Made by a program: the position numbers and the translations under genes
Assembly (NCBI GenBank): GCA_964199315.1
Contig: OZ116703.1
Coordinates: forward strand, 22,072,001-22,136,000
DNA from: Orbicella franksi
Lineage: Eukaryota
Reading direction: 5' to 3'
DNA length: 64,000 nucleotides
The notes under the pieces: model-generated
Told to the model about the DNA's origin: nothing
What the model saw: only the letters and a program-made list of their open reading frames with translations
The model's database searches: none
Shown here: positions 2,127-56,700 of the stretch, piece by piece
Position numbering within the stretch: the stretch's first letter is position 1
How the letters are laid out: each line of letters starts with the position of its first letter

Positions 2127-2170
2127 TCCAATTTAAGCAATTGGAAAGAAGAAGCCTGAAAAAATCAGGA

Positions 2171-2201
<31 letters not shown>

Positions 2202-2268
2202 GATACCGGTGCGATGCTCACCAACTGAGCTATGAAGCCACACATTGGTAGAGCATCGCACCGGTATC

Positions 2269-2299
<31 letters not shown>

Positions 2300-2343
2300 T
2301 CCTGATTTTTTCAGGCTTCTTCTTTCCAATTGCTTAAATTGGA

Positions 2344-2374
<31 letters not shown>

Positions 2375-5300
2375 ATCTACAACCGCAGTTCATATATGAA
2401 TTATTTCATATAAACTTCACAATGAAAGGTAGATTAGTAAAAGAAATTGCACAACAATAGCAGTTACGGAGCTAGCACACAACATATCTGGTGTCAGGAA
2501 ATGTGTCTGTCGTATTCCTCTATATATCAACAAATACTACAGCCGGTCCGCACGATTCTGTATGCCGATCGACAAGGTGAAAATTGTTGGGTACATAATA
2601 CAGCACCACTCCATTTCTTTCATTATTTTACAGCATTCCGTGTTGCTTCAACATTCAGCTTCACATGATGCATAGTTTAGCACGAGCTGTTTGTTCTTTC
2701 ATTTCTGTATCATAGGCGGTTTACTGACTTATTACTTTTCCCAAGGAAGCCAAGAAGGAACATGTCTTAACCCTATGCCATGTGTAATTCAGCCTAGCAA
2801 GCTCTTGTCATAAAGTTTCAATGTTTTAAAACTGGACTCAAATAAACACGTTTCTGGATATGAATAGAACATTTTTACATGAGGTGGACTTTTCGCTCGA
2901 TTACCACCCGCTGTAAAAACAAAAAAAACAAAAAAAACAAAAACGAGCTAATATTACAATCCTCCCCTAAACATCTCTTCTTTAGGTGGTGTAGGAACTG
3001 GACTCGACGAAGCGGGGAAAATCGAGGCGTGGATAAAAGAGGGTGAAAATCAGACAAATAACCCAAGCGACAGGTGAAGGTGTGATCTCTCAACTGCTGG
3101 GTTGAATAACAATTTTCTTACTTGTGAGAAGAATCGATATTAGTCAGTTCATCCTTGTGTCTCGTTTTCAGTGCCTCAATCGTGGACAACAATTGCTCTC
3201 GCTCAAGTTCTAAACGGCGGACCTGGATAAAGGTAAAGTTTACCCATAAGTATTCGTGAAATGGATAAAAAAAAAATCAAGGTACAATGTACAAAGATTT
3301 ATAAGTGCATGTCCATAACCATTGTTTCGCTCATTAAATTTTTTCTTTGGTGACGTTCTTGTTGCCATTGCCGTCATGGTTTGTTTAAGCTCCTGAGTGG
3401 CTAATCAAAACGAACGTACACAACATAGACAACCGATAGCTTCAAACCAACAACTGCCTTGTAGTACATAAAGGTAGCAGGTGCAAGTTTTTTTACAGCA
3501 GCAACAGAGAAGAGTTCTGAAAAAACCATCAGTTAAATAAAAGAGAGAAATCTCACCTTTCCTTCTAACTCTGACACCTTACTCGTGGCGTCCAAGTCCT
3601 TCTTGTGCCTGATGCCCTCCATCTCCTGTACTTTCTTCATCAGCTCTTTCACTTCTTCCTCAAGCCGCATCTTCTGCTGTTCGCGGTGTTCACTTGCCAC
3701 CTCATACTCCATCAATCGACTCTGCTGCAGCTCACTCTCAGCTTTCAGCTTTGTCATTTCGAGTCTTTCCAGCGATGTTGGTTGAGGGATCTGGGGCGAT
3801 GATTGAAATCCAGCAGGGGACTGGTACTGAGGCTGGTAGGAAAGGGTCTGGGGTAGATTGTGGCCGGTAGGCAAAGCGAAAGGAGAAGATTGGTACTGAG
3901 GATACGATTGATGAGTGTATGGCTGGGCTCCCATTTGCGGTGGAATGTTGCCCTGAGGGGAGATGGGACTGGCTGTATATGGCTGCTGTGATGGATATTC
4001 CTGTGGATGGGGAGGGCCGAGTTGTACTGGAACTGACTGCGGGGGTGGTACATGTGATACTGCAGTAGGTGTTGAAGCAGGAGGAACGACACTGGCCTGT
4101 GCAGGGTACAGCTGTGATCCAGGCTGAACTTGTACTGGAGGTCGATTAACCGGTTGCTGTTCAGTTCCAGGTCTGGGTGTGTCCTGATTAATAGATGCTT
4201 GGCGTTTACCTTGCATACCTCTCCTTCTAGCTTCCTCGTTATCTAAGGGACTACCCTCACCCTGACCCTGCTGCGGCCTGTCTAGCGGACCTCCCTGATC
4301 AGCTGCCAGCTGCTGCCTGTCAAGGGGACCCTCCTGTCCAGCTGTTGGCTGTGGCTTATGCACAGGACCACCCTGACTAGGTGCAGGATCTGGTGTATCC
4401 AGCGAACTTTGTGGACTCGCCTGATCACGCCACCGTCTTCCTCTCCTTGGACTGCCTCCTGGTGACTCCCATGGGAAAGATGACGACCTGACAAATCAAT
4501 CAATCAATCAATCAATCAATTAGCCAATTAGTCAGTCAGTCAATCAATGGGCAGTCAGTCAGTCAGTCAGTCAATTTATCAGTGAGTCAGGCAGCCAATT
4601 AGTCTATCGGTCACCGCTTCGAGAATGAGGCCATGAACGAGCATTTGCCATGAACCTCCACTTTAGGTTAAGCATGACAGGGAAAACGCGCACTTTCGCT
4701 GAAAATCCTACTTGCTTATAAACTTACTTGCCGCTGTCATCAGCTGACTCCACCTGTTTTGGCTTTGGAGGCTCGTCAGGAGTGATTCCCAGCATGCGTA
4801 AGAACTCATCATTATCACCGTCCCCCCGGCGCCGGCCGGCCCTTCTTGGCGGAGACGCTTGCCTCTCTTGACGTTCCGGGGGAGCTGAACTCGGAGAAAT
4901 GACATAACGTTAAAGGGTTGTGGAAAACGAACAGGAATGGAAAAAGAAGTGTTAGGCAAGCAACTTGTAACAATGAAAGGAAAAACATGCATGTACCTTG
5001 TGTGCTTGGCGAGTCCTTTGCGCTCTCTCTGGGAAACGGTGTGTTTGTTTTGAGGGGAACTTCATTTAGATCCAGGCCTCCATCGTCATCGCCACCGCCC
5101 AGTCCTAACCAGTCTCCCCCGCCGCCGCCGCCGCCTCCACCACTGGGTTTTGATCCTGAAGACAAGAACACAGTGACATCAAAAGATGAAGCAAACGACG
5201 TTGAAAGGAGGGGCTGTTTCCTTGAGGTAATCAGAAAACTCCAATATACGTCTAAAGTAAAGTGCGTTACTAGGAATTCAAGACGCACCGATTTTCTAGA

Positions 5301-53700: not shown

Positions 53701-56700
53701 CCCAGGCAAGCCATTGACTACACGCAGTCGAAACAGCAACCTTTGCTTCTTAACCTAAAGCAACAATTAATTTGAAGCAATACATCAATACTATAATCTC
53801 CTTGTACAGACTATGTAAATGGAAAGGACAAATAACAGTGGTTGGATAAGGTGATTGGTGCCCAAGGAGTAACCACTGTGCATTCATGTGCTTTGTCTTG
53901 ACTTGTTGACTGGGTATCAAGAAAATACTTATCATAATATTATAATTTGATACAATGTATCCAACTTAACACAGACCTTACAACACTTCAGGCGTTGTAT
54001 GGTACTGTTAGAGTCACCGAAATCAGACATTTGTCACCAAATCTTAATAGTCAAGCACTTGCTCTGCAAATCCAAAAGGTGATTCATAGAACACATTAGG
54101 TAGATTTCACTTTGTGGTGCAAGATCGTAGATTAAACCACACGCCTTTGACAATTAACCATTTTAAGGTTTTGTACCTGTGGTTTTCCCTCTTGATAGAA
54201 TAATCAAAACACATGAATAACTCAAATATGTTCACACTCTACTGATTTGCACTGCAAAGCCCAGACATTCAATGAAAGCATTTTATTGATGGCCATGCTA
54301 CAAGAACAAACCATCAACAGTTAAACTTAATTTCTTATTCCAGGGGTTTCATTAGAAGCCGGCAACCGGCGAAACTCGCCGCCTACTTTGTCAGAATTTA
54401 CGTCTTACCGCCGCTTACTTTGTCTGTATTTTCACTCAAATTGTTAAAAAAATTCATCAGTTTGCTGCCTACTTTAGTTACCTCAGATGGCTATTTCAAA
54501 ACTTATTGAAAACCCTGTTATTCCTCCAGCTCGTTTCCTTACCTGCGATGAAACATTATCCAACAGAATCCTTGCCATGGCTTTCAAGATTGCTGCATGC
54601 AGTCTTTCATAGCTCAGTTCCCTGAGAACTCTCACTATGAAGGGAAGACCAAATCTGAAGCAGTAAAACAGAATTCTTTAACGGTGAACATAAAGTTCAG
54701 TGTGTCCAGTTGCAAACAGGACAAATTCTGCATTCAAGGACATCCATCTAATTTAACAAAACATTTGTCATGAAAATACCACATTTTTACATGTACATGT
54801 AATTATTATTTACCTTTTATTTTTGAAAACAACAAAATAATAATTACAGGGATTTTAAAACACCTTTTCAAAACTTTCAAGGCCTTGAATATCTTATGAT
54901 CTTAAATTTCAAGAACTTTCAAGATGCATGGCAACTCCACCTCAGCAGCAAGTTACCCTATGTGGAAGCCCTATAATTATTTTTATATGTTACCTTTTAC
55001 TTGATGAAGTTTTTGCTGGGCCCTGACAGTTTGCCACAAGGATAAGAATGGTGTCTTGAATTGGTCCACTGTTATCTGCCATGACAGGTGTCTGGACATC
55101 TGCATCCATCTCAGGGAAAAGCCCACTTGGAGCTTCAAATGCATAAATATTGTCCCCTTCATGAACAATGCTCAAAGATTGCTTATCATGAAATGTTCTG
55201 TGAAATCCATCATAGTAAAGTTCTGTGAGGATCAGAGATTCTTGTTTGATGCCTGTCATATCTGACACCACATTCCGCAGGTCAGCAATTGTTCCATGTA
55301 AGGGTACGCTGACACCAATACGAAGTGGAACTCTGGATGAATTTACAAACACTGTGGTGACTATGATGGGGCGGGTTTCCCGTTGTGGGATGGGTAGTGA
55401 GAGACACAGAAATGGATCAAATGTTGTAGACTGTTGATGGCACCTGGGACATTTGAGTGATGATCGATACTGAGCTTGGAATAAATCCAGAACAAAGCTG
55501 TCATTGCAGCGTGTGTGATTAGCAAGAGCCTCCAAAGCAATGGTGTCATCTGATCTTCCTGAACTTTCCTGAAATTACAAAATTTCAAAAACTGCTTAAG
55601 CAAAAGCCTGGCACCTCCTCAAACATTTCAGAATAAAACCTAGCGGTAAAAAACAACGTTTCGATCTCTCTGAGATCATTTTCAAGTTGAAGAAAAAAAC
55701 GAATGAAACATACATATATAAGTACAAATTAGGGCGTGAGAATGTCAAACGATAAAATATGTAAATACAAGCACTAAAATGTAAGTGTTAAAATAATAAA
55801 ATACTATAAAAAAAACCCTATATAAATAACTTTGCACAGATTGAATCTGACCGTTTTTTTTATAGTATTTTATTATTTTAACACTTACATTTTAGCGCTT
55901 GTATTTACATATTTTATCATTTGATATTCTCACACCCTAATTTGTTCTTATACAGTTGTATATGTATATTTTATTCGTTTTTTCTTCAACTTGAAAATGA
56001 TCTCAGAGAGATTGAAACGTCGTTTTTTACTGCTAGTTTTTATTCTGAAATGTTTTTCAAAGAAACTACCTCCTCAAACAATTTAGTAATTGTTAGTGAC
56101 AGTATTATAGAACATTTATGGCTGTGTTTTGAAAACATATTTTAGATTACAAACTGTTTACTTTTACAATATTTGCCACACAAGTAACTTGACTCCAAAA
56201 GCAGGCTATGAATAGCAGTGGAACACTTTAAAACTTTTGTTTACTTTTTTGGACAAGTTTTTAAATGGAATCTAAGGGTTAGTTTCTTTCAAGCTACAGT
56301 GACGTTTTGAATTTTGCAGATACCATCTTCTAATCTTGAAATCTGCTCAAAGGGAAAGGGGAGGACATTAGGGGTGCCTGTAAACACATTCTTCAAATAC
56401 CCCTATGATGAAAATCCATAACAAACTGTAACTTCAAAAGGCCCTAATATTCTTCAGCATGCCAAGAATTATCAACACCTCAGTATAATTGCATAGTTTG
56501 GCATTTAAGCAAAATAACAAATAATTTATTTGCAAATTTCATGCATACCCCAAAGAGCGATAAATAGCAAATACAGTGCACATTAAAAAAGCTGCATCCC
56601 ACAGTTTGGGGAATATAGCAATACTGTGATACTATAAATTCCATTACCTCCTTTTATTTTTTAAGCAGTTTTTTTCATCTTTTTCTAAGAATCAGGTAAA

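Follow-up and report, generated by a model that had tools for sequence, protein, structure and literature searches.

The palindromic insert of 442 bp at 55626-56067 of the window (the whole stretch of 64,000 nucleotides that was analyzed) is best read as a pair of 3′ ends of a canonical Penelope-like element (PLE), which were inserted head-to-head in one event, each with the minimal hammerhead motif of its family, and which are now a decaying relic; we put the probability of this reading at roughly 0.92. It is located in an intron of a USP-type gene.

The insert is flanked by two exact copies of a 13-nt direct repeat (Table 1). The element shares parts of this repeat, and the actual target duplication may therefore fall short of 13 bp. 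Two pairs of inverted-repeat segments, 55621-55698/55978-56055 and 55717-55816/55853-55952, are each 95% complementary, and the centre measures 36 nt. The first-pass annotation had described a palindrome flanked by a target duplication, with one motif per strand, and that outline stands; its arm length of ~190 bp does not, the arms being unequal and ~215-225 nt long. The minus-sense copy has its 3′ end at 55626, which is the “short end” of the family, and the plus-sense copy ends with 17 nt (56051-56067) of the family's one-sided tail of ~27-30 nt. Judged from the alignment, the “loop” of the hairpin is simply the extra 5′ part of the longer, minus-sense copy. The motif string AAC-UUGAAAA-U-GAUCUC-AGA-GAGAUY-GAA-ACGU-H-GUU is present letter for letter on both strands. 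As a pattern it has two matches in the 64-kb window, both in the insert, and none in 100 shuffles, which upholds the claim of one minimal hammerhead-type motif per arm.

Table 1. Features of the insert and of the adjacent host exon (positions in the window)
Feature	Position	Strand	Evidence and remarks
Host exon, UCH/USP-domain coding	55200-55568	-	Acceptor AG at 55570-55569; weak Pfam UCH match
Left copy of the direct repeat, ACCTCCTCAAACA	55613-55625		Last 5 nt (AAACA) also match the element; junction ambiguous
Sense (downstream) 5′-truncated PLE copy	55626-~55850	-	Last ~10 codons, stop and 3′ UTR/pLTR; alignment to L032
Hammerhead motif, sense in host pre-mRNA	55688 to 55652	-	Helix I AAC/GUU, core UUGAAAA plus extra U, helix II 55677-55663, GAA, ACGU, U17; predicted cut between 55655 and 55654
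ORF stop in the minus-sense copy	55820-55818	-	Alignment to the ORF-bearing copy L032
Inverted (upstream) 5′-truncated PLE copy	~55853-56067	+	Family ends; alignment to L032
Hammerhead motif, antisense to host gene	55988 to 56024	+	Core 55991-55997; helix II 55999-56013; C11.1 = U; C17 = 56021; predicted cut between 56021 and 56022
Right copy of the direct repeat	56068-56080		First 2 nt (AC) also match the tail; junction ambiguous

The genome from which the window comes (497 Mb in 805 contigs) was searched with the insert as query. At least 94 arm matches were found, each a single arm of ~230 nt; most occur as inverted pairs 0.5-2.4 kb apart, and the paired arms of other copies often enclose fragments of RT/EN ORFs. 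Among these matches the whole 442 bp is matched solely by the window itself. Such a search had been suggested for the parent PLE and for further copies of the palindromic unit; it recovered the parent family and no second copy of the whole unit.

Outer ends were aligned for 28 loci and are of two types. The short end is constant and always begins near TTTCAGAATAAAAAC; the “long end” has ~27-30 extra nucleotides on the opposite side. Where the flanks are readable, the length of the target duplication varies (13 bp in the window, ~7-9 bp at L003 and ~9-10 bp at L012). Several copies of the family (L021, L030, L010/L018 flanks) lie inside (AAAT)n or (AATC)n microsatellites, where the duplication length is obscured; this location matches the insertion bias reported for PLEs.

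Longer copies of the repeat encode RT and GIY-YIG, and the proposed derivation of the insert from a PLE is thereby confirmed. In the copy L032 an ORF of 364 aa contains RVT_1 followed by GIY-YIG, and in the relative L068 both domains (RVT_1, 5e-11; GIY-YIG, 5.6e-5) are found in an ORF of 816 aa. The combination is a property of these family members, not of the truncated window copy. Intact RT+EN ORFs of relatives measure 816 and 821 aa, and related candidates in the genome number in the thousands. The RT-EN linkers of L068 and of a second relative, L070, inspected by eye for the CX2-5CxxC criterion (Penelope/Poseidon versus Neptune/Nematis), contain a single Cys before the GIY block. The ORF of L032 stops ~265 nt ahead of the short end, which identifies the short end as the 3′ end of the element; the motif is on the sense strand, ~25 nt from this end. 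In an alignment with L032, the window arms correspond to the last part of its ORF and to its 3′ UTR.

Two further loci with copies deserve mention. At L031 (G000:C7:13918000-13927999) the window's PLE family is represented by a truncated copy in a 6.2-kb unit present twice in tandem, and the Integrase_H2C2 (integrase zinc-binding) ORF next to it suggests a nested LTR-type element. At L033:510-667 a tRNA match (50.7 bits) is located in a short palindrome ~1 kb from a PLE copy; with a second, partial tRNA match on the other strand, this may be a tRNA-derived SINE pair.

The complete architecture is seen in the young relative L068, which consists of a 949-bp inverted copy (100% identical), a 189-bp direct pLTR, the ORF and a second pLTR. 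On contig C1 all 27 of the motif pairs less than 5 kb apart are oriented (-,+), that is, head-to-head, with a spacing of 45-4384 nt (337 nt in the window). The statement that PLE insertions commonly form inverted repeats holds in this genome, where such inverted insertions are normal. At L071:1092-5439 (G000:C9:25875500-25882000) two head-to-head PLE copies with ORFs make up a palindrome of 4.35 kb which is 99.9% self-complementary and is a very young large inverted insertion.

A short, non-coding palindrome with flanking target duplications might also be a MITE or other DNA transposon with terminal inverted repeats of ~200 bp, or a self-propagating, retrozyme-like non-autonomous derivative of a PLE; a MITE-like unit had in fact been put forward. 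We regard both as highly improbable. A multicopy unit of fixed size is not what the genome holds, the entire 442 bp being confined to the window, and elsewhere single arms are paired at variable distances (~0.5-2.4 kb) around RT/EN ORF fragments. A DNA transposon or MITE was rejected because the ends are asymmetric with a one-sided tail, target duplications vary in length and RT/EN ORFs are present.

The published hallmarks of PLEs include heavy 5′ truncation, an adjacent inverted 5′-truncated copy, a tail of 30-40 bp at one end, variable target duplications, and hammerheads located in the pLTR, close to the 3′ end (PMC8557442). The tail has been explained by two internal start sites of reverse transcription (PMC11167929). 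The coral insertions share with the elements of PMC8557442 the strong truncation, the adjacent inverted copy, the one-end tail, the variable duplication and the bias for microsatellites; they differ in that both copies in the window have been cut down to the 3′ UTR, so that the hairpin alone is left, and in that the tail is 17 nt long. We propose that one target-primed reverse-transcription event of a canonical PLE, i.e., one with a C-terminal GIY-YIG, would have left two heavily 5′-truncated 3′ ends, head to head, in the intron of the USP gene, and would have duplicated up to 13 bp of the target.

Compared with the hammerhead core (C3 U4 G5 A6 N7 G8 A9/G12 A13 A14/A15.1-U16.1/H17), the motif has every position except that C3-G8 is replaced by U3-A8, and an extra U follows A9. 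U3-A8 is an isosteric substitute for C3-G8. The motif is conserved in position among families of 52-62% amino-acid identity to that of the window, the 3′ UTRs of which are otherwise unalignable, and both helices show compensatory changes across these families (GAUCUC/GAGAUC, GGUG/CACC and GGCG/CGCC in helix II; AAC/GUU and CC/GG in helix I). In 35 distinct sequences, which were collected with a core-fixing pattern from copies that are not independent events, 90% of the cells pair in the proposed structure, compared with 68% for shuffles and 20-63% after sliding of the partners. The same set contains 101 cells with changes on both sides, and it scores 0.616 versus 0.209 for covariation. The both-sided changes are located at pairs 2 and 3 of helix I and pairs 2 to 6 of helix II. 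Positions 1-3 of helix I pair in 97% and position 4 in 47%; positions 1-4 of helix II pair in 96%. With shifted partners these values for the two helices drop to 27-49%. By this measure helix I is just 3 bp and helix II 4-6 bp in length.

The pattern used genome-wide fixed the core, G10.1/C11.1 and GAAACGUHG, and its free tests are positions 3, 7 and 8 together with the two helices. It returned 1216 copies with U3/A8 (11 in the reversed-pattern control), among which helix II takes more than 12 different sequences and N7 any of the four bases. With C3/G8 in place of U3/A8, the design is present in 772 copies (pattern-count controls, at most 11), and the mixed states are rare (C3/A8, 33; U3/G8, 45, with 19 of the latter in one tandem array). 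Copies with C3/G8 come from a PLE lineage whose protein is only 28% identical; U3-A8 therefore marks one clade and not scattered mutants. Helix covariation and the 3/8 counts agree with the first-pass view of the motif as a minimal type I hammerhead in which U3-A8 is a covariant of C3-G8 and helix III is palindromic. We read it as the PLE family's own hammerhead and infer that it is catalytically competent. It is situated ~190 nt past the stop codon and ~25 nt before the 3′ end, with a design of 3-bp helix I, U3-A8 core, extra U after A9, 6-bp helix II and 4-nt palindromic helix III; selection on it would act in the active retroelement, not at the window locus.

The 19 U3/G8 (wobble) copies form a tandem-like array at G000:C1:36879365-37009408, all on the minus strand with a spacing of 2.5-12 kb. 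Amplification of a mixed 3/8 core is seen nowhere else, and the array looks like segmental amplification, not transposition.

None of the Rfam hammerhead models matched the insert at E<=10, and the same was true of four longer copies and six relatives at E<=10/E<=1. The matches that Rfam did give on these sequences are miRNA-like artefacts of the palindromes alone. The window motif resembles Rfam Hammerhead_1 (RF00163) in its three-helix junction and the order of the core blocks; unlike that model, the motif and its clade score below the reporting level. The many RF00163 matches in the genome belong to other families, in which helix I measures 6 bp, the core is CUGACGA and helix III is ACAGCUGU. 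Canonical Hammerhead_1 matches of 46-50 bits are found at L036-L055 (e.g., G000:C3:4672891-4672935) in at least two sequence families, and these are probably coral retrozymes or other PLE families. When the 56-nt arm motifs were folded singly, a stable hammerhead fold was absent (z = +1.4 and -0.3), as is expected of a ribozyme of the dimer type.

In L068 (motif 2121-2154, ORF 2138-4588 on the plus strand) and L070 (motif 3796-3763, ORF 3779-1314 on the minus strand) the ORF begins with an AUG within loop II of the upstream hammerhead. Since their proteins can be aligned from the first residue onward (M-T/S-P-K-R-R), in the upstream pLTR of these relatives the 3′ strand of helix II and GAAACGUCG double as coding sequence; conservation of the motif could consequently be partly at the protein level. 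The window's family has an AUG in the same frame at A9-U-G10.1, and from there the frame stays open across the 3′ end and tail. This AUG frame is open in 15 of 30 sampled U3/A8 copies, and the other two frames in 2 and 1.

As an in vivo check, four polyA RNA runs were mapped to L068:2030-4650. No pile-up of read ends was seen at the predicted cut between 2153 and 2154 in these polyA libraries at a depth of ~20-40, and reads cross the site. Coverage is low, on both strands and 3′-biased, with the 5′ part of the ORF near zero and preferred starts or ends absent. Most of the pLTR reads extend into a variety of flanking genomic sequences, a sign that truncated copies are read through. At this depth and with this type of library, the reads are weak evidence that lends no support to efficient cleavage and does not count against cleavage either. 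The absence of such ends agrees with the report on the Poseidon PLE of Anolis carolinensis by Frangieh et al. 2024 (PMC11167929).

It is possible, though we lean against it, that the motif owes its conservation to its being an RNA fold or coding segment and not to self-cleavage, its likeness to a hammerhead being ancestral. Candidate roles would be translation start, the N-terminal M-x-P/S-K-R-R peptide, or recognition by RT/EN. The start of the ORF within the motif, the alignment of the proteins from their first residue, the predominance of the K-R-R frame among open frames and the missing read ends at the cut site of L068 all fit this reading, as does the finding that catalytic mutants of Anolis Poseidon were without effect on insertion in vitro (PMC11167929). 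It does not sit well with the covariation of the tertiary pair 3-8 and the rarity of its mixed states, with the retention of all the other positions of the catalytic core, or with the C3/G8 lineage, which carries the same GAAACGUCG without an AUG. Moreover, reading frames vary among the families and the RNA helices are still paired. We thus retain the minimal hammerhead of the family as the preferred interpretation of the motif.

Cleavage in the arrangement of L068 and L070 would take off the start codon. One may imagine a switch in which uncleaved RNA is translated and cleaved or dimerised RNA becomes the template for retrotransposition, and also that relic hairpins give rise to small RNAs which target the family. 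Both ideas are speculative, are not specific to the USP gene, and seem to us unlikely.

The translation of the host exon gives a weak Pfam match to UCH, and the distance of 57 nt between the end of the insert and the acceptor of this minus-strand, USP-type exon is as first annotated. In the pre-mRNA the sense motif lies ~85-120 nt upstream of the acceptor and retains every core position, U17 being an allowed H. These two points favor the notion that an intronic ribozyme tunes the USP pre-mRNA co-transcriptionally, or that the antisense arm is an evolved switch. The order of synthesis contradicts the first part. With a host gene on the minus strand, transcription passes through the antisense arm (56067 to 55853) before it reaches the ribozyme-sense arm, and the suggested cleavage ahead of the second arm must be given up. 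The built-in off-switch fares no better, for PLE integration yields such hairpins generically, as the uniform orientation of the close pairs on contig C1 reveals, and the same architecture occurs hundreds of times in the genome. A transcript of 491 nt is predicted to fold as one hairpin of ~210 bp in which the motif is fully paired (MFE -269 kcal/mol, z = -36); this would bury the only sense ribozyme. A pattern search of the 64-kb window found no second sense motif with which it could dimerise, helix III amounts to one A-U pair and helix I to 3 bp, and PLE minimal hammerheads showed very low activity in vitro, with none as monomers (PMC4209133). With CpG decay in both motifs and both arms, regulation of the host gene appears very improbable.

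This decay can be read from the arms themselves, which differ by 15 substitutions and two internal indels (the indels account for 9 of the 15 gap columns). Most of the substitutions are CpG transitions, among them both ribozyme changes (plus copy, C11.1>U; minus copy, C17>U). When inserted, the two arms presumably had the same sequence, as those of L068 do. Neutral CpG decay of both motifs and both arms speaks against a role in tuning the output of the USP gene. The junction of the insert is intact in DNA runs under three organism labels and from several studies, in every run covering the locus, and the insertion is therefore old and probably fixed. The differences between the arms are nearly all CpG-to-TpG/CpA, which fits cytosine methylation of the intron (gene-body methylation). 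The locus is an intronic, neutral scar left by a transposon; it shows no sign of acting in the host gene, and nothing sets the copy in the window apart from hundreds of others.

Cervera and de la Pena 2014 described the U3-A8 covariant in PLE minimal hammerheads, with ~1,300 hits in Schistosoma, and pairs of PLE hammerheads on opposite strands 100-700 bp apart (PMC4209133). The coral motif is like those of the Cercyon PLEs of Schistosoma mansoni (PMC4209133) in being of type I with a short helix I, a large helix II with a 5′ bulged base and a tiny palindromic helix III that implies dimers, and in its location in the pLTR, its opposite-strand pairs and U3-A8. The differences are that the host is a stony coral, in which the motif is known here from its sequence, and that U3-A8 is found in a whole group of families (52-62% protein identity) beside a distant C3-G8 PLE lineage of the same design. 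In the Poseidon PLE of Anolis carolinensis the ORF begins within the hammerhead (PMC11167929). The coral relatives share with it a start in stem II/loop II upstream of the cut site, the lack of RNA-seq ends at the cut, and a tail that corresponds to the second internal RT start; unlike Anolis Poseidon, which has a C3-G8 core, they place their AUG in loop II or at A9-U-G10.1. Earlier publications already cover the motifs, the U3-A8 variant, the insertion of inverted copies, the tail, and ORFs that start inside the ribozyme.

The significance of the insert at its own locus is very little. At the level of the family, stony coral is a second animal lineage in which a whole PLE group keeps the rare U3-A8 pair, and its genome supplies a natural 2x2 covariation table for the 3-8 pair. 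Since the Rfam models miss the U3-A8 motifs of PLEs, this table is useful to ribozyme descriptors.
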